DNA from: Klebsormidium nitens
Lineage: Eukaryota > Plantae > Klebsormidiophyceae
Assembly: GCA_000708835.1 (NCBI GenBank)
Contig: DF236962.1
Location: 372,001-436,000, forward strand
Reading direction: 5' to 3'
Length of the DNA: 64,000 nucleotides
Below, in pieces: positions 2,825 through 55,100 of this stretch (position 1 is its first letter; each line of letters begins with the position of its first letter). The position numbers and the translations under genes are program-made. The notes under the pieces are model-generated. The model made no database searches. It saw only the letters and a program-made list of their open reading frames with translations, and was not told the DNA's origin.

Positions 2825-4470
2825 TAGATTTGGAACGGGATTGGGGGGGTTATGCAGCGGCGCCGGGTGTGTGGGAGGGTCGGTTGTGGACACTAGCTGA
2901 GACGCAAAACATTCATTCGTTTCTGTGCGGTTCGATTTGCCTGATACCGTGTAGCTGATCCAGTCAAGCGGCGAGTACGAGGGAGCTGCCCCGTTGCGAG
3001 TTAGACAAGTTGCGAAGTTTGTAATCAGTCACCTAGAGGCACTAAGGTTAGAGAAGAGTACGTTTCTACAGTGCTTAACTTTGCGTTAGGTACCCTTTCT
3101 TAGCTACAACCCAACAGGTTTGCACTTGATGTAATACAGCCCGTCTTTGTAAGCCTCGATCATTTTTGAGCACGTCCCTCTCAAAGGTATTGCATCAGAA
3201 ATGTTGTGTAATCTCCACTTGACAATCACAGCTTTGTGATGATGACAGTGTGACAGTATACTTTGCGGAGCTGCGCGCTCGTAGTGCCATGGTCGATCAT
3301 CTGGCAAAACTGCAAAACATGTGCCGCGCTCTGATCCTTGCGCGTTGAACTCCTTGATATACGGCCCCATAAGATCCGGGGTTTGACAATCGGGAACCTG
3401 ACGGTTTACATGCTATGATCCAGTAAACTTATTTTAAACTGTCCACGGATTCATGAGCGGGTCGGTGTGGCAGTGACCCATGTGACGTCATCATCGCCAT
3501 GCACAGCGACAGGTTGGCGCTAAGTTTGCTACAGCCAGCCAAGGATCGATTGAAACGTGAACCGGTGCGTTGAGCTAGTAGTGGATAGAAGAAGGCAATC
3601 GTTAAAGCTTACACCATCAAGCGGATTCCGCCAGCCGTTGCTCGAGTACCAGATTACGAGCTGAACAAAGCTGTCCTTGCTGACTCCAACTTCATCATGA
3701 ACGAAGAAGATGTAGGCCACTTAGTTTGGCTCCCCGAAGTTCATGCAGAGCTGGTACATGCTTGACAGCGTCACGGGTAAAGAAGTTGGGCGACGAAGAT
3801 TTGTTTGTAATGAGCGAGGATACCATTCGTGTATCAAATGTACGTACATAGCGCGAGCAAGAGTGGACACAAGTTTTGGCGGAGACCATTTCTTGAGATT
3901 GAATATTTGCACGTCGCACATGAACTTACGTGTGTGCTTTTCACAGTCGGAAGCTTTCATCAGAACTAAGATTGCAGAGAGTCGCAAGCTGGCCGCATCG
4001 TGTGAGTGAAACGAGTAGAGGTAGCTGCATGTGCTGGCACACACATTTCTATCTCAAACAAAGCCTGGGTTCCGCAGTCTGCATCGATATGAGCAAGCGC
4101 TTGAAGCAGTTCAGAATCGAAATGTGTCGGAAATCATTCAAACCAAACGGACAGAATTGGTACAAAGCTAACGCGGTACTGCAAGTTTGAGCTTGTTCGC
4201 TTCACAATCGAAAGGAACACTGACACGAGACAAGACCGCCTTCGATGCCCGATGCAACCTGCTGATTTTCTAGACGGCGAAAGCAGCAAAGCAGCTGCTC
4301 TCCTAAGAGCGGAATCCACTGCCCACAATTTGCAAAGGACCCTCCTCGCTGAGTTTCACCATTGTCTTTTCCTAGTAGAGGTCGTCTTATCATGTACAAA
4401 CACCCACGCTAACGGCTTCCTATTTACAAAACGGCTCTGATTGCAACGAGCTAGTACTTGGATCTCTAAC

Positions 4471-4523
4471 ACTTTTCGGTACAGTACCGAAAAGTTTTGT
4501 ACGTTTGTACGTAAGTTTTGTAC
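4471..4523. promoter_or_regulatory. Perfect 12-bp inverted repeat (ACTTTTCGGTAC-A-GTACCGAAAAGT) followed by three TTTGTACG (=CGTACAA) copies; SBP-type GTAC cluster
   Basis: Read directly: palindrome 4471-4495; GTAC at 4454, 4479, 4484, 4499, 4507, 4520. Regulatory function is inferred. Confidence 0.45.
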
Positions 4524-4591: not shown

Positions 4592-5852
4592 TCATTCGTT
4601 GCTTCCTGAAACAGAAAGGGCTCTTCGTTTCGCACGTACTTCGCGAGGTGATCCGCTGCCTGCTCCCTCTTCCGACCTGCAGATTCTTCGGAGTGTCTTC
4701 ACACACTCCCACTTTCCCCCGTTTTCCGACATCTCAAAAGTGAGTTCCCTCAGTTCAGGACACCCTTCCAGTGGTTTTTCCTGCTCGGAGACCCATTTTA
4801 GAGTCCGCTCTTTTGCGTTCTTTGACGACGGAGTATCCATCCTGACATGAAGCTCCTGCAGTTGGGGGCAGTCTTTCTCGAGCATCTCATACAACGACGC
4901 GGGTCTGAAGTCCACGTAAGAAAAGTGGCGCCAGTAGAGCTCTAGAACCCGTAAAGTGTTTGGGAAAGTAAACCCAGGGATATTGACCAACAGTGGACTT
5001 GGGCACATCCGACGGCTGCTCATCCTACTACCGGCATCGTATACGGTTGCGCTCAGGTGCCGAAGACTGGGGAGGTTTGCTGAGACGAGAGCAAATGGGA
5101 AGTCTACGTCGGGTTGATACTCCGGGGTAAGGAAGACTCCAACTCCAAGGTAAGGGCAATACAAGCCTGCGATGTTCAAGCTCGCCAAATGTTCGTGCTT
5201 CACAACGAAGTCGTAATCTAGATCATGGCGTGCCATGGATAAGCCTTCCAAGGTCAGAGCTTCGAGCTTGGGAAAGCGTTCCAAGAAGCTGAAGACAGTA
5301 CGCTCGAACCGGAAGTGAAACCCTGTAATGACCAGTCTCTTGAGGCCAGTTGCACACGCAGAGACTATCTTCTTTGGGTACTCGTCCTCCCACGTCGTTC
5401 TACAGGAGGTTCTACAGCGCTGCCCACAAGAGGTCCCTTCTATCTCGACGTCTTCCCAGGGAACCTCGGTCAATATTCTGAGAAACGAGAAGTTGCAGTG
5501 CTCTTCCTCGCTTCGATAGCTTGTGTCTGTGATCACCAGCTTGATTAGACCGGCGCGCAGGCTGAGCTCCTCTACGAGGATCTCTTTGGGAAGCTTCAAG
5601 TTGACGGGGAGTGCCCCATCTATCAGCTCGCCATCCGCTGTTCCTCGCTCACAAGCTGACAAACCCCGCGCCCGTTTCAAAGGCGTCACGACCAGAGTCT
5701 TGGTGCACCGTCGCGCAGAGTCACGCAGACCTTTGCTGGTTTGCTCCAGCGCTTGGAAGCTCTTTGCGCAGCTCTGCCGCACCTTTTCTGTGATCATGTC
5801 CAAGAGCTCAGAAGGAAGCAGGGTCGAAGCTTGTTTCTAGCGCCGGCGCCAT
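4592..5852 (-). pseudogene. Intronless F-box/LRR-like protein, paralog 1; 1-nt insertion near the N-terminus (or sequencing error)
   Basis: 403-aa ORF 4592-5803 is collinear with paralogs 2 and 3 (LEALTL, LPSLRHLSAT, LRVLELYWR, DCPQLQELH). The homologous start MAPALETSFD (ATG 5852) is out of frame with LPSELLDMITEK because of an extra C in GAC-CCTG-CTT at ~5821-5823. Confidence 0.7.
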
Positions 5853-36403: not shown

Positions 36404-39400
36404 TCAGCGTCTTCGGCCAGTCACGCATGCCCAACCATCTTCTGTCGTGACCTGTATATCCTCCAAGTACTCTTCATAAGTCCTCACAACCCGGGGGACT
36501 TGTTCCTCCAGCACTCCTGATAAACCAACCACCGCTCCTGGTTTAGCGTAGCCTGTAATCGTTTTCGCCAACGCAACCAACGGGTTTAGCAGGATGTTCG
36601 CAACGACAATGTCGAAGGCTCCCACGCCCCCCTTCGCTTCGTCCGAGTCTCTGACGACTGAGATGTTTTCCGGGAGCGGGTTGCCGGCGCTTTCTCGATC
36701 TGCTAGGTAGACGCGGAGGGTTTCCGGCTTCAGGCCGTTCCGCTCGGCGTTGTGGCGCGACGCGGTGATGGACAGCGGATCGATGTCGACACCGACGGCC
36801 TGCGCTGCTCCCAACTGCGTGACGGGATCGCCGGTCCTTACAGCCCTTTGTTGACGGCTTTGTCAAATTTCTTTCGAAATGTAGGTGACGCACCCGCAAA
36901 ACGAGAGCGTAATCCGAGGCTTGCGTATACATCGGTGTTGGGAAGCAACGCTCAGCCATCGCCGGTGGAAAGGATAATCGTTTTGTGCTAAGTTCTACAA
37001 TTGGTACAACTTAGGAAGGCCCGAACGGTCAAGGCTTTAACTTGGAGCTGGAAAACCTCTCGAAACGGCTTGAACCAGATTAATGTCGACCAAAAGAACG
37101 GCACAATCCGACGCGAACACGTTTGCTATAAAGAAAGAAAAGCACAAAGAAAGCACAAAGAAAAGCGGATGAAGCGACGACTTAACGAATGTCCTTTACG
37201 TATCCGAAGCTTAGCATTTGCGATATGCGATATTCGAGATTTCGTTTGCCTTGAAAGAGGTTGCTGGCAAACAAAAGATTCAAGGTAAAAAGTCCTGCTC
37301 AACTGCAAAAGTTCGTCCCAAGTGACACGCTCTTTGGAAATGCTCACTTTTCCGGTTTCCGAAAGATCTCAGCAGACCAAACAAAGTTTGGATCACCGAC
37401 CTCGCTCTTCTGACCGTCAGAATGACAAGGAATCGGCGACAAACTACTGAATTCTGCTCACAAGAATACCAGCCACGCTCAACTAAACGGAAAACTACTC
37501 AAGATGACGTCACTCTGCTGCGCTTTCGACGCCGACGTACCTTGACCGCCGCGATCGCCAAGATGCCCGACCCGATCCCGTAGTCCATAACGCGCTCCCC
37601 GCCCTTAACCACGCTCCTAATCCACGCCAGGCACAGCCGCGTCGTTGGGTGATCCCCCGTTCCGAAGGCCACCCCGGGCTCGAGAAAGACGTTGATGGCG
37701 CCCGGGTCGATAGGCTCACACCAGGACGGTATGACCCACAGCCCCCGGGAGATCTCTACCGGTTGGTAGGAGGCCTGGGGTAAAATTTGGTCTTTTTAGG
37801 GATATTGAAGGTTTTAGCATTCTCCAGAAACTAGGGGACTCCAGACTCATAGGGTCTTTCAGGTCTCATACCGGTTGGAATGACCCACAGCCCCCGGGAG
37901 ACCTTTACCGGTTGATATCGACGCCTGGAGAAGAATTTAAGGGTTTCAGCTGTTTTACGAAGGTTGTAGGATACTTCTAAGCTTCATACGAGGCCCGGAG
38001 TAGGGGTTTTCGAGGTTCTAAGGTTGCATAAAAGGGTATTAGGAGTGTTTTCGAGCCTTACATCGGTTGATATGAGACCCTGAAGTAGGGGTTTTACATT
38101 TTAGGGGTTTCTCGAAAAAGGGTTTTCGGGTTCTCTCAGGGCTCACACCGGTTGGTATGAGGCCTGGGGTGAAGTCGATGAACTGGTCAGTCGGTTGGCG
38201 AGCATCGAAGCTCTAGGGCAAGCAGCCTGGGCAAGTTGGTCTATAGATCGAGCAACTTGTCAACCTGGAGTTGGTTGGTCGGACTTCCAAAGTTGGCGGC
38301 GCTGATCATTTTGAATCTCTCAGAAGCTTCTAACCGCGATGTAGTTTCACGTTTTCAGAATGATCACGTCCACAGTAAAGCCCTGACCTGGTTGCAGATG
38401 TATGTCTACTACAAGACGTCTGACTTTTTGGCCAGGAACAACCGGCCGGGTTGCAGTAGAAGGGTCTTTAAAAGATCGCAGTACGGTTTACTACTTTCAA
38501 ATACAATTAGGCGTGCATGACGTCACGCTGACAAGTTCATAGGATTTGGAAGCGGTCCGTCCGCCACCACGGTGGCGTTGACCGTCGAGCTCCCATGTGC
38601 AAATCTGAACCGTTCAATCGACCAGTGCCAACAATCATACGGGTCAGATTACGGCGGGATCAAAGATTTGAGGCCAAATCACAAAGACGATTACATACGA
38701 CTTGGATGTCATTGGAGCACCCCCCTCTTACCTTGATTGTTTCCACCCAGTCCTGGTCTTTCGTCATGCTGACGTCATACTGCGGCGGGCCTGGGAGCCC
38801 GAGTATCTCTGCGGCTTCTTCAAGGGCCTCCTTGATGCTGACGTCGGCAGGAAAGAGGGCGGTCACGGCGCTCTGCTCGGGAAAAAAAGCTATTGATTGG
38901 GAACAATCAGTGAATTGCATACAGGTCAAAGGCAAGTTTAAGCAGAACCCAGTCTCTGCAACGAGATGGAAACGTAGGGGAGTTTGAGACGAGGGGCAAT
39001 GGAGGCAAGGAAAAGAACGGAAAGAACAACTAGGAGGATGTTCGCAGTCGTATCCGAAGGTCCACCCAAAACGGAAGAAAAGGACAGAGATTGTTGCCGG
39101 CGAAGGTCTCCGATGTTGTCTTTTATACTTGGTATCGAGGATAGAAAGAACTTCCGAGCTCGACTTACTCCCACAATCTAATATCAGAGACTGGGGACCC
39201 AAGTAAAGCGTGGACAATAAAACACGAAACCAAGAGGAGCAAAGATCGACGGAAGAGATGACATATCCACCAGATTATCGCAGTGTTGGTCAAGTGGATA
39301 TGTGCAACCGTAATAGATGCAATTTTGAGGTGAGTCCAAGTGAAGCAACGTTCTCAGAACAGACATTCCTCGAGGACAAGTGATGCCACAAACCACGATT

Positions 39401-41668
39401 GGATAGAAGAAGCAAAAAGGCTAAAACAGAAAAGCATCGAGTCCGATGTAGAGATTTGACCTAGCGACCGATTGGAAAAGCATGACAAAGAGGCTTACCT
39501 TTTCCCATAGCCTCATGTCTGCAGGGGATCCCCAAGGCTCCGGCCCCGAGTAGATCTGCATGAATAGGGGCCGCCGGTCAGCATTTGACAGGTGGCGCTT
39601 AACAGCTCACCGCAACCAGAAACTAGTCAAACGAGTTCTTGCACCGTGCTTTGATCAGCCAACCGACCTGTTGTGCTTCGCAAGAAGACGAGGTAGACCA
39701 AAATCTGTTTGTTTGATGAGCCAAGGGCTCGGGTGGCGGCTCAACTGTGGTTCACAGCACCTCTGATTGAGGCCGCTGAGTACACAGGTTCCTTGGCAAT
39801 TCAAAAACGATAAAACGGCAATCGGGGGGCAAGCGCCCCCTGCTTGAGGAACAAAGTCCATGCACGCGGAGAGAATTTCACCGAAGGAGACGGCCACCAC
39901 GCTTATCCTGAATATTTTTTGAATATTTTTGAATATTGTTTGAAACAAGCTGCGCTTGTCAATTTGAGTGCAAAGGGTACGTGTAGCAAGGTCCGGAGGT
40001 GGACATTAAGCTGGTTACTGGTGGCCAACCATAAGAGCCAGTTTCTTCGCAGGAGTCTGCGGCTTTCAAGCTGGTGCACATCTCGAATCTATGTCATCTC
40101 TCGGCACCAATTCCTAACAGGCTAAAGGGATGAAGGAAACGGTTTCCGAAGCTGACCATGACAGATGAAAAGTGCATTACTTGCCTAGACACGGTTGTCA
40201 GCCTGGCTCGCAAACATAGCATACCAAAAAAAATGGTCACTCTGAACAGGAACCACACCTCGTCACTTTACTTTCACCTCACTACTTGATGACGGCTAAT
40301 GTGCCTCTGCCTGATGTCAACCAAATAGCTTTAAAGCAATCATTATTACAACTAGGTGCGGCTGACTCACCTCCTCCTCCCCTTCCTGGTCCAGGTTGGC
40401 ATCTTCAATGCTGCAGGAAGCAGCCCCGCAGCCAAGCAGGGCATCGCAGAGCGCGTCCTGGATGGACATACAAAAAGGAGGATGTCAAATTGCACGGTGA
40501 GATGGATGAAAGACCATAGCTTCAATCAAGCTATCTATCAATCACATGTGATGAAACAAAGGGCCAGAAAAGGAAAAGTGGGGGGCTTGAGGCAACGGCA
40601 GCCCCCCCGTTTTAAAGGTTCAAAGGGGGCTGGAAGTATGTACTGGGCACAATTCATGCAGATTAGAGTAATCTGAGGCGAGTATAATAGCCACCGCTAA
40701 CCAAGCCTTGCCATCCTGCACAGCATCTGTTTCCTTTCTAAAGCTTACGTTGAGGGCAGAAGACCTTTAAATGGAGACTTTGAATTTATCCACTTTGACA
40801 AACTGTGCAGATGAGCAAGCGAATTGGACTCAAGCTGACTGGCATTAAGATGGTGTCAGAGTCTGGGTAGAGGTGAACCTGAAACTGCAACCTGCATCTT
40901 GCCCCCCCCAGCGACGGCAATGCAGCGTAACCTGGTCGTTCATTGAAAAGAGGATCAAAGCTGTTCAAAGGAGAGACCTAAAGAGGCTACCTACATTGGA
41001 AGTTTTAGTTTTGATAAGAGGGTGGTGCAGGTTCAGCAAGAATGTTGGTGATAGCGCAACTTACAGCATTGTCTCCTTCGACGTAGATCTTTGCAGCTTG
41101 CATTGATCCTCCCAGCGCCTCTGCATCATACTGACTGTCATGACTTTTGCTGCTCGCATCATACAACGGAGCTTCTCTCTTGCTTGACCCGTTTCCAGAA
41201 GCTGTGCAGGGTGTGTCTGTCTGTATAGAGGCAAGGCGAAAAACATGACCCGTCTGAAATTGACGATTGTGAAGGAGTGTTCCGGAAAAGCCGATTGCTG
41301 TCCAGCTCGGAAAGAAGCTCTTCCAAGTGTGCAGTGGTGGAATATTTACTGCCAACTTCTTCAGCATATTTCTGGGTGGGGAAATGCAGGCTGCATTCCA
41401 CCTGCATAACTTCTTCACAACACTGACAGTATCCATTGCTCTGAAAAGACTGTTCACCAGCATGTCAAGCGCAATGCCCGGTACCTTAGTACACTCAAAG
41501 TTACAGCATTCCGCATGGACCGGAGTGGCTGCTTCAAGCAGTCACGTGTGCTAATGACACTTTTAAAGACACCACTTGAACGGCCTTGGAAGTCATAGAC
41601 TTAGTCTAGTGCCTACCTGCCCGTGCTATAGCTGCAATGGACCTGCAAACCGCCATTTGCATTGCCAT
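36404..41668 (-). CDS. prmA: Ribosomal protein L11 methyltransferase (PrmA) with organellar transit-peptide-like N-terminus; exons 41668-41617 (tentative), 41390-41065, 40457-40371, 39555-39499, 38872-38732, 37774-37541, 36814-36404
   Basis: Spliced product contains DALCDALLGCGAASCSIED, DQDWVETIK, LWVIPSW, LEPGVAFGTGDHPTTRLCL, VMDYGIGSGILAIAA, GVDIDP, FDIVVANILLNPL, GLSGVL and DGWACV, all PrmA hallmark segments. Joins are frame-consistent. Confidence 0.92.
37725..38175 (-). repeat. Intronic echo copies of the PrmA acceptor and exon start
   Basis: On the + strand, ATGACCCACAGCCCCCGGGAGA..ACCGGTTG..GGCCTGG (37730-37780) recurs at 37880-37930, with shorter pieces at ~37863, ~37985, ~38058 and ~38142. 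Confidence 0.8.
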
Positions 41669-42106
41669 GGCCTTGAGGAAAGTCTTCACAAAGCTTCAAG
41701 TTCAGGCTTGAAGGCGAGCTAGGTGTGTGGTTCCGTTTCAATGAAGTTTCTGCGCTAGGCCGTCGGAATGCAGCGCGGCCGCACACTGCATTAACCGGCC
41801 GGCCGCGCGGCCGCGCTACAACTTTATAATCACAGCCAGGGTTTGACGGTTCACGCTCGCGCACGAACAGTTGTACAGTTCAGGTCCTGAATAATGACAC
41901 CGTGGAGTTGTTCAGGGGGGGCAAATTGTGATTCTGCCGCTAACAGGGGGCCACCTGCAAAAACGGATCGAGGGAGGAAGAAAAAGCAGATGCTGCCCTC
42001 ATCCCCATCCAGTTGAACAAAGTAGCCGGGTCCAATCAGATTTTGCCACCTGAGCATGCAAAACCGACGACGCAACAGACTTTCTAACCGTTTTGCATGT
42101 CCAATT

Positions 42107-42488
42107 GTACTTGCGATAGGGTAGGTACTCGCGAGCCTGTGCGCAACCGTCGTTGACTCCAATCTTCATTCCGGTACCTGCGTTGCAGTGTACAAGACAA
42201 GAGGTAGGTACCGGCTCTCTGACAAAAGTTCGTTGTAGGTACCTGGTCCGTACGTGGGAACTTTCAAGGTACGGTACCTCGGATACCCTACTAAAAGTAA
42301 AAGTCTCATGTAACTAGGTAGGTAACTACCGGCCGGCGGTACCTAGAAGGGTGCATACCGCCAAAACTCAAGGCAGGGAGGTACAGACCAGGATGGAGAA
42401 TAAGGTACGTACCCAATACTAGCTTAAGTATATAGGTACCAATTTCGCGATGGGACTCATGTACCGTAATGTACAAGGTACTAGGTAC
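42107..42488. promoter_or_regulatory. Dense GTAC/GGTAC array (18 GTAC in ~380 bp) in the divergent PrmA/ARM intergenic region; candidate SBP/SPL (copper-response-type) element cluster
   Basis: GTAC counted at 42107, 42125, 42174, 42190, 42208, 42239, 42250, 42269, 42274, 42339, 42381, 42405, 42409, 42436, 42461, 42471, 42478 and 42485. Function is inferred. Confidence 0.5.
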
Positions 42489-43134
42489 CTACTACTAGCC
42501 TTAGGTATCTAGATCAACACTCGATCAGCTCCTCAGGACCTCAAGTGCAAACGTACTGGAGCACCATTCCTAGGGTTCCCGCCTTCTTGTTGGATGATCA
42601 GCACATTCCTACTTGCCCAGGCTGAAGCTGCATCACATCGCCTAGCCTGCCCTTGGCATGGGTATGGAAAGAAGTATCTGTGTGCAGCAAAAGCGCTCGC
42701 GTGGAACTGCTCCTTCCGCTGCACGATGAGGTGGTGGGTCGTCCATGAGAAATCCATGCTGCAAGTGGCAAAAGCATGAGCTCCTCACGCTCTTTGCCAC
42801 CTTCTCTTCGAGGAAAGAAGGGCAATTCTTATGGCACATAGCTCTGCAGCTGTTGCAAGGGCCTAGATGCAGGGAGTAAATGCACTACTATCCTGATTGA
42901 CAAGCGAAGAGCTTCAGGCCAAGCAATAATGTAGCATTCGTGGGAATTGGACTGACCGCTCCTACCGAGTTCAACAATTGGACCAAACACCGGACTTTCT
43001 TCCCAGTTGTACAGCTGAGGGCAGCTGGTAAACTGCCACTGCTTAACTTAAGTCTTAAGGGCAGCTTAGGCAGGATGGGAGTAGGAGCTGGAGGGCGTGG
43101 CTGCTGAGCACTGGGGCAGGGCGCAGGTGCCAGC

Positions 43135-46100
43135 ATGGACCCACGCTACCAGATGATGAGGGGTCAGGGTGCGGGGCACCCGCTTCTGGAGTTTCCTAGT
43201 GACGATGAGCTCAGGGCAGGGACGTCCTCAGAAGGGATGATGCCAGAGGTGGCACACAACCTTGTTGACCCTTCGCTTTACATGGTGAGCCTGGTGGCAC
43301 ATTCTAAAGTTGTCATGTTTTTCTCCTCTGAGTATTTTGTTGATCAAGTGGTCAAAGGCTTCGCTTTTCGCCTTTCCCTTTTGTGCGCTGCATGTTGACT
43401 AGTGCTACCAGGCTCCATCAGGCAGCTTAAGCATGTGCATAGAAGGCTTCGAGGAAATGAAAGCGTCAAAATGGTAAGCTGCGGTAAAGTTGGTGGATTA
43501 AGTTTTTGCTAGTTTGCTAGAGGTTGCTTTTTAATCTTCGACGCACTCCTAGTTGTGGCAAGGGCCTTGTAATCTCCCATGCAATCTGTCAGCATGCCTC
43601 TCTAGCATAGTAATCCGACCTTACAATGTATTTCGCTGTGTACCACAACGAGTCCGAAGCATACCACCTCAAAATTTTGGAGGGGTATGCCAAATAAGCA
43701 TGCACAGGCAGACTTCAATAAGGGTTTAAAAGGCTCCTTGGCCAAATGGCACTTGCAGACTATGACAGATACTACAAAAACCCTCCGTCTTTGCAACGTA
43801 TCAGAATGACACGGCCAGACTCAAGGTCTTGGAAACTTGAGAGGTTTTGCACCTGGCCTTGACGAAAATGATGTATTCAGGACCTTGCAGAGGCTAGAAG
43901 TCACACGTAACCAGCTGCTTCACTGAGGTGCAAGGGCAGAATTGCAGTGGAAGCTTCTTACTTTTGCTTCCTCTTCACTAATTCGCCCGCACATCATATA
44001 GTCTTTCGCGCTCTAGAAGCCTGCTTAGACAGAAGCTTCGTCATGCACGGGGTGAGCCATGGAGTAGGATGAGAAGGAAAGAAACAGCTGCGCTTCCGCC
44101 AGACCATTCGAAGCGGCGCTAGTCAAGCCATGCTAATATCAAACATCGCCTGTTGCAGCCCTAACAAAGCCCTGGTTTAAGAGAGCCTACTTGCCCGTGA
44201 CCCCAGGGATCCCCAACTAGGATGCAAAATCTACATTCACTGGGGCCCTGCTAAAAAGCAAAGCTTCTTGACATACAGGAGGCGGCTCAGCTGCACGACC
44301 CCACATTCCACCCGCAAGCCATGTTCAACCCCGAGAGCCCCTTCCACCAACTTCTCCCTAACAGTCCCGCTCCTGGAAATGGCGCCCTCCTCCCTGCCGA
44401 GTACTTTGACTCTCTGCTGAACGCCTATGGCGTTGGGTTGGACCCCCGCCAAATGGCCGAGGCACGCTTGCAGTCCCAAGGGGGGCGGCAGTCAAACCCA
44501 GCCGCATTTCTTCATGACGGGGGACTTGACGTGCTGGCTGCGGAGACCCCCCGGGACGGAAACACCTTCCCAGGGGGTTTCGGCCACCCGGGTAGCAACT
44601 CCCCAGTTGACATGTACGGCGCACTCCAGCGCTTTGCTGCCAGCTTTGCCACCTCCCAGGGGGGTTTGGGGGCCCCTGTGGCAACCCCCCGTCAACTGGC
44701 CGCGGAGGAGCCGTCCCCATACCCCCCCCCAAGGGGGATGGAAATGAACTACACTACTCTCGGCCACTTTCCCGAGGCCGACGGGGCATCACACGGCAGG
44801 ACAAGCCAGCCCCCGGAGCAGGGGTTCAATTCGCGGGTGCTGACGTCAGCGGCGTGCATCACTGCGATGATCCAGAAGCTGCGGAGTCCTGAGGACGGTG
44901 TGAGAAGGGAGGCGATGCAAGCAATTAGAATGTGGGCCGGGTCTAGTCTGCTGCACCAGAGAGCCGTGGCGGCAGCGGGGGCTATCCCCCCTTTGGTGGA
45001 CGTGCTGAGGACTCCGAGCAGCACAGTTGTAAGTGTCTCACTGTGCAGCAAACGCACTGCTTCGGCTTGCGCTTTGAGTTTTTCAGGTTTTTTGGTGGAA
45101 AGGACTTGATGAGAACGTATTTCAACAATTGAACGTTTTGTTGTTTGACTGAGGCTTAGAGTAACTTTCTTTCTTCTTCCCTGAGCTTATGAATAGCGTT
45201 TCTGGAGACCTTCAGGGACTCCACTGTTTATCAAGTGTCAAAGGGTGGGGATTAGAATGCTTGCAGAAATGGAAAGCATATTCTAGCAATGCGGACTAGT
45301 CCTCTATACCTCACCGCACGCACACATTGACTCGAGTCACAAGCCTTGTCATGGGTGTCGTGCTGCCAGGGTTTTGTCTTTCTCACCGCATAGGCAGTCA
45401 GAAGCTGGTCTAGGCTGATACCAGGGCACAGACCTCAATCAGCCTCCCCTGCTTTCAATGGCATACGTATACCCAGTCCCGATGAAGTTCCATACGTTTG
45501 GAGGCCGTTTTTCAGTCCTCACTTTATTTCGCTAACCCCATTCCCTCCACTCCATTCCCTCCACAGGTCTGGGTGGAAGCCGCTCAGACTCTAGCCAGCT
45601 TAGCAATCAACAACGAGGAAAATAAAGCGTCGATTGGGTTAGCGGGCGCAATCCCCCCCTTGGTTAATCTGCTGGGGCTTCCAAGCCGGGAAGCAAGGGA
45701 GGCGGCGGTCGGAGGTCTCAGCTGCTTGGCTCGAAATGAGCATAACAAGCAGGCAATCATGGACGCAGGTGAGTGGCCAGCTTTAAACGTGTGGACTTTG
45801 ACGGATGCTGAGCAGGCGCCAGATCTTGCTCTCCAGAGAAGGACTGGAAGCTGATTGAGGGTATACATGTGAAGGGGAGTCCGCTTACTCAGGGATGGTG
45901 CTGGCATTGCAAGGATTGAAGAATGGCCTGGAGTGGGCTCAAAGAGCGCTTTGTCGTGTGATGCCGAGATATACAGCTTTTCCCAGGGGCTAAATGAAAT
46001 AGCACGCGCAGATTGCGGTGTTGTGGATTCCAGTTGTGCTAATGGGGGAATTATGGGAGAATGTTTTAGAACACCGTACTTAGCCGTATCTGAAAGAGAG

Positions 46101-49100
46101 TCATATGCTTATGTTTGAAGAAAGAGAGCCAAGAAAAAGGCAGAGAATGAGGAAGGATTGTCCTTCAGGAGGATTTCAAGCAAGATGGAGGGAACTGGCA
46201 CAGTCATGGCGTCAGAAAAGCGCCATTCGAGAGATATGTCGAGCTTTTCATGGGTCAGGGCTTATCAAGATACGGAGATTCATGCTGATGGAGCGCTCTT
46301 TATTAACGCGTCTTGTAGGTGCTGTCACGGGGCTGGTACGCATGCTGACCGACGGGGACAACAACAGCGAGTTTGGGCGCGAGGCAGCGGCAAACGTGCT
46401 CGCCAAGCTTGCGGTAAGGGGGCCAGAGACCGTCGCCTAGTTTATCCCGGAATTCTGTGTCCTAGTGACTAGCAATAGGCTTCCTTCAGGTTTGACTTCT
46501 CATCTCATGTTATGCATCGTTGCACGTGACCCGCAGAGCAATTATATAGCCCAATTTAAAAACATTCAAGCAATCTTTGTGACATTGGATTGACCAGCCA
46601 CTTCGATCAAAGCAGCTAGACTTTTGGCTGCCCATTGCTATTCGTTTGATGTGGGCGCATGTTCTGGGCAGTTGCTGCCAATCTGAGGCCAGATTTGTAA
46701 GCAACAGAACGAATTTGCGTGTGTGGATTGCGTATGAAGGTAGAGGCGATGTTGGTGGCAGAAGAAGTAAGAGTTATTTGAAGTTTGATTGGTACTTATG
46801 AGTGGGCTTGAGCGGTCCTGATCTGCGGAAACGCGTGAAAAGAAGCCGCTGATCCAGACCAATCTTGAGGCGCCTTTCTTTTCTTCTCTTTTCTCATCGG
46901 AAAGTGCTCGAATCCAAAATGAAGCTTGATATTAAGCCTGCTGGTCGTAACCCCGCAGGTGGAGAACGACGCAAATAAAAAGGCGATTGGGCAGTACGGT
47001 GCAATTCCGTTCCTGATCCGGATGGTGGAGCACGGGTCCGCCAAAGAACAGGAAGTGGCGGCCGGGGCGCTTGCTAATCTTATTCAGGTGAGACCCAAAT
47101 CAAGCAATCCAGACTGGGATGTTCGGCACTAATCCAATGTGTGCCGCAAACTTAGGAATGACACTGCCATACTATCTGGCTATTTCACTCTCTGGAAGAG
47201 CGGGCTTTTCTTCATTACAGTCAGTTCTTCTGGCACTTTCAATTGATAGGGAGAGCGGCTACTTTACGGGTCCACGACAGACACACAACATTTCCGAAGC
47301 GCCCGACCGAAAGCTACTCTCGAACTTAAACCTCAAGGTTTCACATGCTGATCTCGAAATAACTTCTGGTTTGCAGGACCCGCAAAACGCGCTGGAGCTC
47401 GTCGGCGCGGGGGGCGTGGAGGCGCTGTCCGAACTTTTGGACTGTCCGTGGGAGGGGGCGCGCCAGGCGGCGTCGGCTGCGCTGACGCAAGTCAGCGTGC
47501 ACGAGGCCAAGTGGAACGAGGAGTTCAACCTGCTGCAAGCACAGGGGCTCGAGGTGGGAGCTGGAGCTGCCACGTTGACGTGTGGGCTTGAGGGTTCAGG
47601 CTTGTTTCGCTGTCGATTTGGTTGGAAGGGGGGCTCGAAGAATGTTCACCGGAACGAGAATGTGGGTCTGCTGCAAACAGTGGGGCTGGGAGATGATCTC
47701 CGCATCACAGTAGGCTGAAATCTAAGTTACCTGTTTGAGAGGTAATTCCTGTCAAGGGGTCTGACGCTTTCTCGTGTTATATTCTCGTCAATATTAATTT
47801 CGAACTTGCATGCCGTTCCCTCCGACTTCCTCATGGGAAGCCCCACAGCCCGCCTTGATCACATAGCGAAAGCGTTTGTCGAGTTCTTTGATGGATTGCG
47901 GGACAAGAAATTCCGGTCTGGTCATTCTGAACCCCGCCCTTGACCCGGAATTGTCAATTCTGCAGGACGGCCTGCAACCAGTCGACGACGAGGACGAGCT
48001 CACTATGGACGAGGTGCGTGCCGCTGAGGAAATCCTCCGCAACGCCATCAACGATAACGGGGGGGAGGAAGACGAGGACGATGTGCCCCCCGAAGCGGAA
48101 CCCCCGGCAACCGATGAGGTAGGAGGGGAGCGGGGAGAAGAGGAGGACCAGCCGGATGACGTCAGCATCAGCGAGGCGGAGAGCTCGGACGAGGACGTGC
48201 CGCTGGTGAAGAGACGGGGCGCGGTGACGTCACAGGCGGCGTCGGCGAGAGCGGCTGACGTCGTCGAGGGCGTCGCTGACATCACCAAGGAGGGGAGAGA
48301 GCCCCCGGAGGACGTTCCGCTGGCGATGCGGTTCCGGGTTCCGTTGGAGGAGGCGGGGGCGGCGCGGCGGCGGAAGGGGGCCAAGAAGCAGGGGCGGAAA
48401 CAGGGGAGGAAGAAGCGAGTGGTGAAAATTCCGGAAAAGGGGGGGGCAGACTTGGTTGCGGAGGAGGGACAGGAAAAGATTGCCGCGGAGGGGGGGGGAG
48501 AAGCGAAGCTTGCAGAGGGGGGGGCGGAAGCGAGCGTTGCAGAGGCGAGCGAGCAGTCGTCAGAGGAGGACGTTCCGCTGGGCATGCGGAAACGAGTGAT
48601 GTCGGAGGAAGATCTGCCGATCTTGGCAAAGGGGCTGAAGCCTCTAGTTCTGGACGAGAGCATTCCGCTGGGGGTGGGGGTGGCGCGCGCGCCGAAGCGG
48701 CGGAAGCTGGAGCTGCGGCGCGCGGGGTCGGGTGACGTCAGCAGCCGGGACGGGTCCGAGAGCGAGCGCCCGAAGCGGAAGCGCCGCCGGGCTTCAGTGG
48801 CAGAGAGGTGGGGCTCGGGCTTTTGTTCTTCTCTCCTTTTTAAAGAATGCTTTTGATCTGTAGCATCTTCTCAAAAAGAGCTGACTGGCGCGTGCCGAAC
48901 CAATCGAGATTGAGGCGTTGAAAGAGGAAGCAAACGGACGGCCTGTTCGTGGTGAGGGCGATAGGCAAGCCCTTGGACCGCATGCCGCTTAGACTTGCTC
49001 CGTCTGGAACAAGACCTTGCAGATCAACAAAGCCCGTAAGCTATTTCTGGATAGCCCAGCCGTTAAAGCGCCTACGTTTTGTGCCAGGCAATATAACTGC

Positions 49101-52100
49101 TTCGTGCCAGTACTTCGGTCGCGAAGCCTCACAAACTCTACGTGATTGCTGACGAATGTTCTCGATATCTTACTCTAGGTGGGACTCGGAGGAGCGCGCT
49201 TCGGCGGACCCGTTGGACGAGGAACCGGCGATCCGGGCGGCTTTACACTCCCCTGTGCAAGCGACGATGACGGAACTCCTCGGAATGGAGGACCCCCCAG
49301 AGGGAGCGTTTGAGGATGCGCTAGCCGGGGAAGGCCACGTGACCGAGAAGGGCAGCTTAGACGAGGCGCTGTTACCCCCCGGAAAGGAAGAAGAGGGATC
49401 AGATCCGGCAGGGTGGGATGTCGTTCGGTCGCCGGACGACGAGACGGAGAGCCCCGAAAAGGAGAAGAAGCGGCGACGGGGGTCCAAGAAACGCGCGAAG
49501 CCGATGCAGCCGCCGCTCAAAGTGTCGGCGGACGTCCTCCGGAAGCCGGAACTCCAGCTTTCCGTTCCGGAGTTCTCGGCGGAAAAGGCGGACGCGGAGA
49601 CGGCGCAGTGCGACTGCATCGGCGCGACGGCGGGGGTACACAACGGGGACTGCCAGTTCAGGAGCCCGGTCGGCAAGCCCCCCCAGAGCAGCGCGGCGCA
49701 CATCCTCGCGTCCGGGGGGAGTGCGGCGAAACCAGAACCGGCAAAACCGAAGGCCCCCTTGGCGGCAGGACTCAGCCGCTTGATCGTCGCCTTCGCAGCC
49801 GGGTTGAACTCGACCCCGCCCCCCCTCCCCCCAATGCAGCCGCTCCGAGAGCCCGGTCGAAAGCCCCGGGGGCGGACCGGAAAGCTCCGGCCGGCGGCCG
49901 CTGTCCCCGACCCCCCCCCTGCGGTGCCCGGGCTCCAGCAAGGCCTCCCCGCGCTCATGGGAATGCTCCGGAGCACCAGCTTGGAGTCCCAAGAGTTTGG
50001 CTGCCTGACGGTCGCACTGTTAGCGGTTCAGGGGGGGGACGCCGCCAAGCGGAACATGGTCGAGGGGGGTATCGTGCCCGCCCTGATTTCGATCGTGCGC
50101 AGCGCGGAAGCCGGCCGCGTCTCGCAGCTTCTACGAGGGGGGGGCTTCTTCCCGCTTGCTGGGAAGGGGGGCCAGGTTCCGGGCCAGTCCGCTCTGGGCG
50201 GGGGGACGACCGTCAACGGAAGGCCGCGGAAGCGGCGGAACGCCTTCACGAACGTTGGCGCGGACGGCTTCTCTCGCCCCCCACCGGAAGGCACCTCCCC
50301 CGCCCCCGCCCGGTTACTCGGCCCTGATCTACTCCCCCCGTCCACAAATTACCAGGGCGGGGGAGGCTTCCAACCTGCTACGGGGGGGTTCTCAGGCCCG
50401 GACCTCCTTCCCCCCGGGACGCACACCTTGCAGCAGAGCCTTGGACCGCCCAGCGCGGCAGCCGCGGCGGCGCGCCACATCGGCCTGGATCTGCTTCCCC
50501 CCGGAACGAGTGTGACGCAGTTTGGGCCGTCGGGAGTGCGCTACCGCCTGCCGGTGAACGCCATGCTGAACCGAAACGGGGGGGTGAAAAAGGCGGAGCA
50601 TCACCCCGGGGGCCCGAACGTGCCCGGTAGAATGCTTCCGGGGGGTAAGCTTTTGAAGCCGAAAGCGGAGCCGACGGTTCGGGAGGCGGGGGTGGGAACC
50701 GGGGCGTTCTTTCCGGTGGCCGGGGATGCGAAGAGACGGGTCGGGCCTATTCACCTAGTAAGCAAGCAACCGGTACAAAGCCCCGGCTGGACTTCCAGCC
50801 AACCGCAGTCTATCGAGGGCACAGCGCAAGCAAGGGGAAGTGCCCCGAGCGAGAACGGCGTTGGGCCTAACGGAACGCAAAGTGAGCGTTCGCGCTCCCC
50901 CGAGCAGTCGCAGATTGTTCAAAGCAACCCGGGTTCTTTGACAGGGGCAGATCCGGCGCCTCTGACAGAGAGTGCGGAAGTAAAGGTGCCAAACGCGGCC
51001 GAAGTTGTAGATTTGACGAAGGAAGCGGCGGCTACAGATGAAAACTCGGAAAAGAAGACAGGATCTGATCAAATCGTTGCGGCGGCAACGATCGAGGCGT
51101 CGCCCGGAGTGGAAAACGGGGAAGTGTCTGAACAGCCCACAGCAGCTTTAAGAGACGGTGCAGGGGTCGGTGAACAGCCGACAGAAGGTACTAACGTTAG
51201 ATCGACGGTAGCACAGAGCACTGCTTCGGACAGCGGAGTCTCTCAGCCTGCAAATGCCCCCGTTGCACGGCCCGAGGTCGCAAGTGAGCTTCTACCTGAA
51301 GCGTCGACTGCCGGAGAAAAAGCGGAACTAGAACGGAGCGCGGTGAAGACGGACATAGAGACAGATGGTTCGGAGAGCTCACAACAGCAGACAGCAGAGA
51401 AGCCGACAAACGGAATAAGCGCACAAGGAAGTGCGCAAACAACGGGGACTGTGGCTGATGCGGAAGGACTGACAGCACAGCAAGCGACGGTCGAAGGGAC
51501 AGTCCCCGAAACGGAAGTCGAGACGGTACCGGAATCTGCAAAGGAGAGCGCAATTCCCGAGCGAGAAGGTGATGTTGAGGAAAACATAGCGGCCTCCAAT
51601 GAAGCCTCGACGGGCCCCGATGACGTCACAGCCCCTCAGAATGACGTCGAGTTGAGAGAACCTTCAAACCCTTCCGAAGAGATCACAGCGGCCGTTGATC
51701 CCGCCCCGGCCGCAACAGATCAAATCACGGCAGCCGTCGATCAGGCTGCGGCGCCAGACCCTGCAGGGGAGTCCCCGTCAGCCCCCCCGTCAAACCTTCC
51801 GTCGAATACCGCCGTCTCGAGCGGCTCCGATGCCGTCCCGGCATGGGACGGCTCTCAGTCTTTGATCCCCCGGGCGCTTTCCACCAACGCCTTTTCTCAG
51901 GCTCTTGCCAGCGCGTCAGAGTCCCCTCCGGAGTCCCCTGACAAAGCAAACCCGAGACACCTGGCGGCGCTCGCACGCATCGCGGCCGCCAATGCGCTCT
52001 CGACCCTGTGCGTCGGCAACCCCGCGGGAAAGGACGCCGCGGTCCGCGCCGGGGGGGTCCAGGCGCTCGCAATCATGGCCGCGCTCGCGCAGGGCGAGGC

Positions 52101-55100
52101 GTCGTCCAATACGCCGTCCGAAAAGCCGCGCGAGTCGTCCGAAACGCGCGCGGAAGCGTCCGAATTGCTCGCGGAGGCGTCCGATCTCAGCGAGAAGGCG
52201 TCCGAACGCGCGATAGAGGCGTCCGAAAGGCGACCGAACGCGTCCGGAAGACGGCCTGAGTCGAAGCGCGCGCGAGGCGCGCGAAACGCGGAGCGCGCGG
52301 CCGCCCTTAGTGCGCTCACGAGCTTAGCGCTGTCGGACGGCCCGCAGAAGCAAAGGATGTCGTCTGCGACGGCGGTGCCGTGGGTGGCAAAAATGATGGA
52401 GGGAGCGGACGCTCTAGAGGTTGCCGCGGGGGCAGGAGGACTGCAGGTAAGCCTTCCGAGTTTCTCGGCGATGCTCCTTTCTGCAAATTGTCGTCTCTAT
52501 CCACAGGCGTCTGGGCATTGTCCAGATTGTTGCTGACAAGAAAAAGACCCGTTGGGTCAGGGCCTCAACAAAATGTCCTTCTGTGTTGGCATGTCTTGTC
52601 ACTTGTCTTGCAAATTAGAATCTTATATGCAAGTACTAGCTAGTGCCTTGACGTCAAGAGCAAACTTCGAATATGTAGCTTCTTCAACGAGATTCATCGC
52701 AGAGCCTTTATTCTCTGAACGCGTGAGGTGTTGTTAGCATCTTTGTCGTCTCGTTAAAGCTCTTCTGCTCTGCTTCTTTGACTTCACTTGCTGTTCATTT
52801 CCCAGCACTTCTTTACCTCCACTGAAATCCATCCTTCGTTTATACTTCTTGACGGCTGAACTTGCAAAGGAGCAAAGAAGACATGTAGAACCGCTGTTCG
52901 GCTTTGCCTTTAAATTAATGCTCCCCATCTTGCAGTCGATTGCGGCGAGCCTAGACTTGGAAAAGATGGACGAACCCGCCGTTTCCCAAGACGCCAAAGT
53001 TTCCGCTGCCAAGCACATGCCTCTCGAGCTCGCCTTCACTCTGATGGAGCTCATCGCGGGGGGGGCTCCCGAGACCAGAAGCGCCGCGATCCAAGCGCTC
53101 GCGTCGTTCCTGATCGTGCGCCAAGATTTGGCCTCCAAGCTGGGAGGGTTTGGGGGTTTGGGCGGCGCGTACTTCGGCCTCCACGAGCAGCTGCGCCAGG
53201 CGGGGCGCGCGGGCGCGCGCGCGCTCCTGTCGCTCCTGGGCACGCGCTCGGACGCCGCGGTGCGCGAGTCGGCGGTGGCGGCGGTCGCGGCCGCGGCCGC
53301 GGGCTCGCGGCGACTGTTGGGCTGGTTGGAGGAGGAAGGGGTCGCCCCTGCACTGATGGGCATTTTCCGAAGCGGGGGCGATGAGTTGATGCGCGCGCTG
53401 GTTCTTGCGGCGGCGTTCAATGTGGGCGCGCTTAAGGGGAAGCTTACCGGGATGGGCGGGGAGGACGTCCGGTCTCTGGTGGAGTACTTGAAGACGGAAC
53501 CGGAAACTCCGGAAGGGGTTCCTGAGGACGTTGTGGCTAAAGTGGAGGTTGGGGCGGGGACGATTGGAGGGGAGTCCAAGGAGAAAGAGCAGGAGCGAAA
53601 GGAAGGAGCTGGGGTGAAACTAGAGATGGTGGAAAGTGGCTTGGGGCAAGAGGCGGAAAAGCTGGTTGCTTCAACCGAGTCAAGGAATGACGCAAAAGCG
53701 GATGGGGTCGATTCAGCAGAAGCGGTTGGTGTTTCGGATGGTGAGCGGACTCGGGGGGTGAGAAACGCAGACGGGGCGGGCGTAGAAGAAGGGGAGAAGG
53801 GGAATACTTTGAACGGGCCGGAACCGACGGAGAAAAGTGGGGACGCAAGCGTCGAAGCTACGGTCTCAAGCGTGGAGCAAAGAAGCGAGGTTATGGACAA
53901 GGGGAAAAACGCGCCTCCAGAAACGGTCGCAGCAGAATCGATAGAGTGCGCTGCAACGGATCCGGGGGCGGCTTCTCCCGCCAGTCCCGAAGTTTCAGAA
54001 GCGAAAGGCGAGGAGGCGTCAGTCGTGGAGCCGCCACGTGTCGCCTCTCCAGAATCGAAGGGCGAGGAGGCGTCAGTGGTGGAGCCGACACATGTCGCCC
54101 CTACACTGAAGACATGTAAAGTCGAACCAGAAGATGGAGCGCTCAACCCGCCGGAGAGTGCGACGCCTTCTGATCCGACTTCACCACAAGCGGAGAAGCA
54201 TTCTGATCTTGTTGCGGAAAGCGGCCACGTGGCAAGCCCTTCGTCCGACGCCGCGGGACCTTCCGATGAAACACCTAGGGAACCGCCAGTAGCCGCAGAA
54301 ATGACGTCAGCAACGGGAGCAACGAGTGCCTCTGCCGAACAGCCAGCCGCATTGGAACTGGATGAAGCGAAGGAGGTCGTTCCTGCAACGAATGACGTCA
54401 CCGCCGTGGTGGCTCGTCCGGAAGCACACGTGGCAGCCGTCGAGGAGGCCCACGTGGCTCCGAGCCCCAAACCCCCAAACCCCGCGACGCCCTACGACCA
54501 CGCGGCCGGCGTACTCGTTTACGCGGCGCTCGGGTGCGACGCCAACGGGCACCTTGCGCTGGTCGGCGCCGGGGGGATCCCCCTCATCATGAAAGTCCTA
54601 ACCAAAAAGGGTTGGGGTTTGGATGGGCCCGCTAGAGAGGCGGCCGCCGCGGCGCTAATGATGCTGGCGGCGTCGAGCGAACAGACTTCCCGGGAAATCC
54701 GGGCGGCCGGGGGAGTGGCGCCGTTGGTGAAGATTTTGGGAGCGCAGGCGGGGGGGAGCGTAACCGGGGGAAAGGTGTGGGGGGAGAAAGAGGCGGCTGC
54801 GGCGGCGTTGGTTGTGCTCGCTGGTGAGAACTGTTCCACTGCAGCTGCACTAGTTTACTACTGGATTTTACTCTGGCAACCCTTGTTTGATCTTAGACGC
54901 GTGTGACTAAGATAGGCGCCCGGGAGACGGGTGGGGTAGGTAGGGTAGATTGGGGTGCGGAGCATGTGATGATCTTGGTTGGGGTTTTGAGTCTGTGTGC
55001 CTGGGTAGCTTGAATGTTAATCCACTTAGGTATCACGAGAGTTGCCAGTATCTGTTTTTCATTGTTCTACTGCGCGTTCAGCTTCTGTACTGTTGTGTAC

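Follow-up and report, generated by a model that had tools for sequence, protein, structure and literature searches.

The 64-kb window, by which the whole analysed stretch of Klebsormidium nitens DNA is meant, carries two divergently oriented genes, and the non-coding region between them holds a dense island of the tetranucleotide GTAC (Table 1). The first-pass annotation had set this island between a PrmA-like gene on the minus strand and an Armadillo (ARM) repeat gene on the plus strand, and Pfam matches bear out that setting. The exons of both genes were searched singly, without spliced models. One minus strand exon matched the PrmA catalytic domain, and the Arm repeat (PF00514) was matched by four plus strand ORFs from 44321 on. 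Three of these matches were above the curated cut-off, while the fourth (47119-47718) was weak, with 16.6 bits against a cut-off of 20.6. The distance from the end of the island to the ARM start codon, earlier estimated as about 650 bp, is 647 bp, and this ATG (43135) is conserved in five orthologs. The corresponding estimate of about 440 bp on the other side holds as a distance (439 bp to 41668), the PrmA ATG itself being putative and known from sequence reading only. Adjoining the ARM gene, a plus strand ORF of 1126 residues (49156-52536) gave no Pfam match; it is 80% identical in the closest related locus and 51-65% identical in JGI and Logan contigs, and is predicted to encode a large lineage-restricted protein.

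A word search with the 262-residue ARM ORF identified three Logan proteins and a search with the neighbouring 1126-residue ORF identified two JGI contigs, which together represent five syntenic loci (L001 to L005). No protein identical to those encoded in the window was found in the word searches with the ARM and neighbouring ORFs, and a search with ARM exon 1 returned the L001 copy alone. L001 belongs to a closer relative, with a protein identity of 89% and introns that match at about 0.65-0.70. L002 and L003 matched the window at identical coordinates and with identical identities; along with L004 and L005 they form a more distant group with about 72% protein identity.

Two conserved boxes, A and B, flank the GTAC island. 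Box A is found in all five orthologs. Its inverted pair reads CATGCAAAACCG and AACCGTTTTGCATG after CCAATCA, with an RY-like CATGCA and a Myb-like AACCG. The pair is kept in L001 and also in the distant relatives, there minus its CATG ends. Box A is a probable core promoter or regulatory element of the PrmA side, and box B, likewise kept in all orthologs, is probably a proximal element of the ARM side. The E2F-like word in box B hints that the ARM gene, or the pair as a whole, is under cell-cycle control. A metagenome scan with the box A pattern gave no match; as the pattern would fit L004 and L005, the scanned collection evidently does not contain those samples. Every ortholog also has GC-rich palindromes of the GCGGCCGC type about 250-300 bp from box A in the direction of PrmA. 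On the ARM side, a short upstream ORF was found in the window and in the relatives (L001 1322, L002 993, L004 4086, L005 4365), situated 27-30 nt ahead of the ARM start codon with the frame kept. Its peptide begins with MGVG or MGAG and mostly shows a Cys before the stop. The conservation of this ORF indicates that the 5' UTR of the ARM gene extends at least to its position, and it probably acts as a regulatory uORF of that gene.

Table 1. Features of the PrmA/ARM intergenic region in the window and in the related loci. Coordinates refer to the window unless a locus is named.
Feature	Coordinates	Strand	Description
PrmA catalytic-domain exon	37499-37672	-	Pfam PF06325, E = 3.2e-20
Putative first coding exon, PrmA-like gene	41622-41668	-	ATG proposed in the first-pass annotation from the sequence alone
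Palindromes of GCGGCCGC type	41780-41816; L001 60-230; L004 2980-3040; L005 3270-3310		GC-rich
Box A	42022-42100		CCAATCA box and inverted pair GCAAAACCG / AACCGTTTTGC of GCAAAAC-type words; all five orthologs
Spacer between boxes A and B	42093-42573		481 bp, filled by the island; 19 GTAC, 14 AGGTAC, 3 GGTAGG; 1.24 GTAC expected from rest of window
GTAC / AGGTAC(C) island	42107-42488		18 GTAC; 14 AGGTAC (9 on plus, 5 on minus strand); 7 GGTACC palindromes
Longest island word identical in L001	42203-42216; L001 542-555		14/14 bases; only long one
Degenerate 7-bp micro-array	42471-42498		Four units starting GTAC/CTAC; read off the sequence, under the Tandem Repeats Finder threshold
Box B	42571-42595		E2F-like word TTCCCGCC; kept in all orthologs
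Upstream ORF of ARM gene	43075-43107	+	10 codons; same length and position in window, L001, L002, L004, L005
ARM-repeat gene exon 1	43135-43284	+	50 codons, GT donor at 43285; codons conserved in five related loci
Orthologous spacer, closer relative	L001 452-863		10 GTAC, 7 AGGTAC, 6 GGTAGG; 0.03-0.5 expected from rest of contig; reached in 0/500 shuffles
Orthologous spacers, distant group	L002 155-443; L004 3305-3526; L005 3583-3819		2-4 GTAC, 0 AGGTAC, 0-2 GGTAGG; 0.3-0.5 GTAC expected

An exact recount agreed with the earlier figure of 18 GTAC cores in the island, of which 12 read GGTAC on the plus strand. The whole window contains 183 GTAC, and the island is its densest 400-bp stretch for this word, followed among unrelated regions by one near 4.2-4.5 kb with 9. 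About 1.5 cores had been expected earlier, which is correct for a uniform base composition, and the window's own rate outside the block gives 0.99. The Poisson probability of 18 cores is about 5e-17, and about 6e-14 once all window positions are allowed for. Shuffling of the island with preserved dinucleotides gave a mean of 5.6-5.7 GTAC and a maximum of 11-12. GTAC is in excess in the window even when the island is left out (183 against 111 expected from dinucleotide shuffles for the whole), and outside the island there are 21 close pairs (30 bp or less) against 12.4 expected. No cluster like the island was found in the introns and other non-coding DNA of the 64 kb, nor in about 65 kb of the relatives' loci.

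The amplified word is longer than the bare GTAC and reads (T)AGGTAC(C) on both strands. The GTAC core is palindromic and each site therefore has two flanks, so that 18 cores give 36 half-sites. Position -1 of the half-sites is G in 21/36 and C in 5/36, and position -2 is A in 20/36, whereas the flanks of GTAC outside the island are flat. Similarly, C is the next base after 21 of the 29 GGTA (72%) in the island, compared to about 26% elsewhere. Six of the seven copies of TAGGTACC in the window are inside the island, as are 7 of the 14 GGTACC. The flank bias together with these counts and those of AGGTAC shows the unit to be a palindromic word of 6-8 bp, (T)AGGTAC(C)(T), of which GTAC is just the centre.

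The claim of the first-pass annotation that the block is not a simple satellite stands, since Tandem Repeats Finder reported nothing in it at a minimum score of 30. The cores are spaced by 4 to 65 bp with no evident regular period, and about ten units are solitary in unique spacers, 16-65 bp apart. Direct-repeat families in the block are short, with 65-86% identity; one of them (family D1) is a weak unit of about 83 bp which occurs twice. Apart from a few doublets, tandem structure is confined to one 28-bp run with a 7-bp period. The run, a degenerate micro-array (Table 1), indicates that part of the island was enlarged by slippage or micro-duplication. The micro-duplications also include doublets of 4-5 bp at 42269/42274 and 42405/42409 and three GGTAGGTA words of the (GGTA)2 type. 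Inverted repeats inside the block are weak (23 nt, 78% complementary). Taken as observed, the island is real, single-copy in the 64-kb window and in about 65 kb of related DNA, and non-tandem, with a word multiplied about 14-21 times on both strands.

Comparison of the orthologous spacers revealed how recent this enrichment may be. The spacer is longest in the window (481 bp), shorter in L001 (412 bp) and shortest in the distant group (222-289 bp). The island is present at the orthologous site in L001. The abundance of AGGTAC in the window and in L001 and its absence from the distant loci restrict the island to the lineage that comprises this genome and L001. In the L002, L004 and L005 spacers, where GTAC is mildly in excess (Table 1), CGTAC accounts for up to half of the cores. 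GGTAGG occurs six times in the L001 spacer and twice in that of L005, with less than 0.1 expected. Runs resembling (GGTA)n/(CCTA)n are present in the same spacer of L001 and L005, the one at L005 3600-3625 being CCTACCTACCTTACCTATAGG. The occurrence of such a run in a distant locus suggests that the tendency of the spacer to GGTA/TACC simple sequence predates the AGGTAC island. These alignments indicate that it was in this lineage that the island originated or underwent great amplification, on a spacer with an older mild GTAC excess.

Per-site identity between the spacers of the window and L001 is 0.44-0.64, at or under the identity of the introns. Only 3/19 GTAC have kept their position; the figure for 4-mers in general is 8.6%, and the difference is not significant. 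The GTAC words specific to the window often align to gaps or to one-mismatch versions in L001. The single long word identical in both (Table 1) is not significant either, because chance alone would yield about 1.5 runs of this kind at neutral identity. Individual GTAC sites thus turn over at approximately the neutral rate, with frequent gains through small insertions or duplications. As the conservation of sites is not above neutral, there is no sign of constraint at the site level, and any function must reside in density. The island accordingly takes the form, in the comparison of the loci, of a fast-evolving spacer between the deeply conserved boxes A and B of the divergent PrmA/Armadillo-repeat pair. 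The pattern of conservation would also fit an untranscribed promoter core.

To our knowledge, SBP-domain proteins are the only readers of the GTAC core. The earlier description of GTAC as the core bound by these factors agrees with published work (PMC9516184; bioRxiv 10.1101/2021.06.03.446925), and K. nitens has two SPL genes (PMC10796333). Clustered GTAC is typical of the targets of the copper regulator SPL7, a cluster being defined by cores less than 100 bp apart (bioRxiv 10.1101/2021.06.03.446925); FSD1, the strongest SPL7 target, has eight cores in its ChIP peak (PMC9516184). The island resembles the SPL7-bound clusters of the Arabidopsis FSD1 and miR398 promoters in having several GTAC at distances below 100 bp within a proximal promoter, its 18 cores leaving no gap above 65 bp. 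It differs from them in the number of cores, which is twice that of FSD1, in its AGGTAC(C) flanks and in its flanking genes, which are not copper genes. The published extensions of the core are GTACTRC and A/TGTACT/A for SPL7 (PMC9516184), TNCGTACAA for the SBP box (PMC10796333) and GTACGG for tomato SlSPL-CNR (PMC13458263). The island contains no GTACTRC, no TNCGTACAA, two GTACGG and three A/TGTACT/A (WGTACW), so the flank preference of SBP sites is not reproduced in it. Generic SBP-box sites (TNCGTACAA, GTACGG) favour C at position -1 (PMC10796333; PMC13458263), while the island favours G. Copper-response elements (CuREs) comprise one or two cores and lie close to genes that respond to copper or hypoxia. 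The island shares the core with the CuREs of Chlamydomonas CRR1, in which GTAC is essential according to the work cited in PMC10796333 and PMC9516184, and differs in repeating a longer palindrome in about 20 units.

A smaller GTAC cluster is situated at 4454-4523, just 3' of a minus strand LRR/F-box-like ORF (4592-5803). It consists of CGGTACAGTACCG and three TTTTGTACG words, one of which is a full match to TNCGTACAA; nothing in the island comes so near to the classic SBP box.

Candidates other than SBP proteins were also considered. A resemblance of AG|GTAC to splice donors was dropped, since the real donors in the window are GTGAG and GTAGG. The type III site of algal LEAFY is a palindrome with central ACCGGT and without spacer, as seen in the crystal DNA (bioRxiv 10.64898/2026.04.13.717636); ACCGGT occurs 14 times in the window and not once in the island, and a LEAFY type III site was rejected. 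For R2R3-MYB factors, the pattern ACCTACC is found three times in the island out of five in the window, and GKTWGGTR three times out of 11. The (GGTA)2-type word GGTAGGTA, with its three island copies, equals the MYB AC-I / type IIG word.

Among the explanations of the island, the one tentatively preferred here, at a probability somewhat short of even, is a homotypic motif cluster or docking platform in the promoter common to both genes, for which SBP proteins would be the foremost candidate readers. The non-random density, the bias to a longer word, the position between two conserved boxes, the common vocabulary with L001, the GTAC excess in distant relatives, the lack of a like cluster in the other non-coding DNA of the window and the related loci, the clustering as in SPL7 targets and the two SPL genes of K. 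nitens are in favour of such a platform. Against it stand the neutral level of site conservation, the near absence of SBP flanks, and the micro-duplications and (GGTA)n-like runs, which betray a mutational process. A strong rival, though a somewhat less likely one, is neutral cryptic simple sequence. Here an unconstrained spacer would have gained GGTA/TACC words by slippage, micro-duplication and palindrome-mediated template switching, and GTAC would be a by-product without regulatory role. Short units, rapid turnover and lineage-specific growth are shared with degenerate microsatellites, and the micro-array, the two doublets, the repeated (GGTA)2 words, the duplicated unit of about 83 bp, the frequent gaps opposite the window-specific GTAC words, the (CCTA)n-like runs of L001 and L005 and the neutral or faster divergence without site-level conservation can all be read in this way. 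Slippage would, however, hardly make the ten or so solitary sites, and a plain (GGTA)n contains no GTAC at all, yet C is the prevailing base after GGTA in the island. A degenerate microsatellite would be a head-to-tail array, whereas the units here are mostly isolated, palindromic and on both strands, and the abundant introns of the window and of the related loci have no comparable cluster.

A reader of the longer word other than an SBP protein, that is, an R2R3-MYB (AC-I, ACCTACC = GGTAGGT), algal LEAFY at its type III site or a dimeric factor for the AGGTACCT palindrome, is improbable. The share of the window's ACCTACC and GKTWGGTR words held by the island, the surplus of GGTAGG in the L001 and L005 spacers and the palindromic nature of the 8-mer, which hints at a dimer, would suit such a factor. 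However, the MYB words make up only three of about 20 units, the LEAFY core is missing, and no known factor can be named for AGGTACCT. Of still slightly lower probability is the super-element proposed in the first-pass annotation, in which a CRR1/SPL7-type SBP factor would switch PrmA, the ARM gene or a local non-coding RNA under copper deficiency or hypoxia. Its basis is the essential and clustered GTAC core of CuREs and SPL7 sites (PMC9516184; bioRxiv 10.1101/2021.06.03.446925) along with the two SPL genes of K. nitens (PMC10796333). Nevertheless, the island has few or none of the extended SPL7, CNR and classic SBP motifs, and the neighbours, a ribosomal protein L11 methyltransferase gene and an Arm-repeat gene, are not known copper-economy genes. 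AGGTAC is missing in the distant relatives though both genes and both boxes are conserved there. Nor did the RNA part of that proposal find support: no relevant Rfam match was obtained at E up to 1, the sole row being a chance bacterial sRNA outside the block (E = 0.83), the fold z-score was -1.18, and the island showed no character of a structured RNA or miRNA precursor. A copper or hypoxia switch is not indicated. Least probable is a remnant of a transposable element or dispersed repeat which came to lie in the promoter by chance, offered earlier as a fallback. The weak internal inverted repeats are the sole feature in its favour; a second copy is absent from the 64-kb window and from about 65 kb of the five related loci, neither terminal inverted repeats nor a target-site duplication were found at the block borders, the spacer is co-located in all five orthologs, and the island is common to a relative about 33% diverged at neutral sites.

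If the island is a docking platform, it would act as a high-avidity homotypic array in the shared promoter for a factor reading the GTAC core, and density, not any one site, would do the work. The two SBP-domain proteins reported for this alga, among them Kfl00107_0150, are the candidate readers. Such a platform could keep the promoter open or tune both genes. A wider proposal is that the Klebsormidium lineage evolved a class of promoter islands with tens of AGGTACC palindromes, which would offer high avidity to the two SBP proteins or to another dimeric factor, control shared housekeeping promoters as a non-copper use of GTAC, and be quickly gained and lost between sister species; this must at present be considered unlikely.

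Should the island prove to be bound by a factor, no denser natural GTAC cluster would have been described. Binding would mean that an early-diverging streptophyte alga employs the SBP/GTAC code, or some new reader of AGGTACCT, beyond copper homeostasis, and that platforms of this kind come and go within a single genus. If the island is neutral, it would provide a clean example of simple-sequence growth in a promoter spacer which mimics a binding-site 'super-element', and a caution for the prediction of regulons from motif counts. The comparison of five species points to boxes A and B and the uORF as the truly constrained parts of this promoter.
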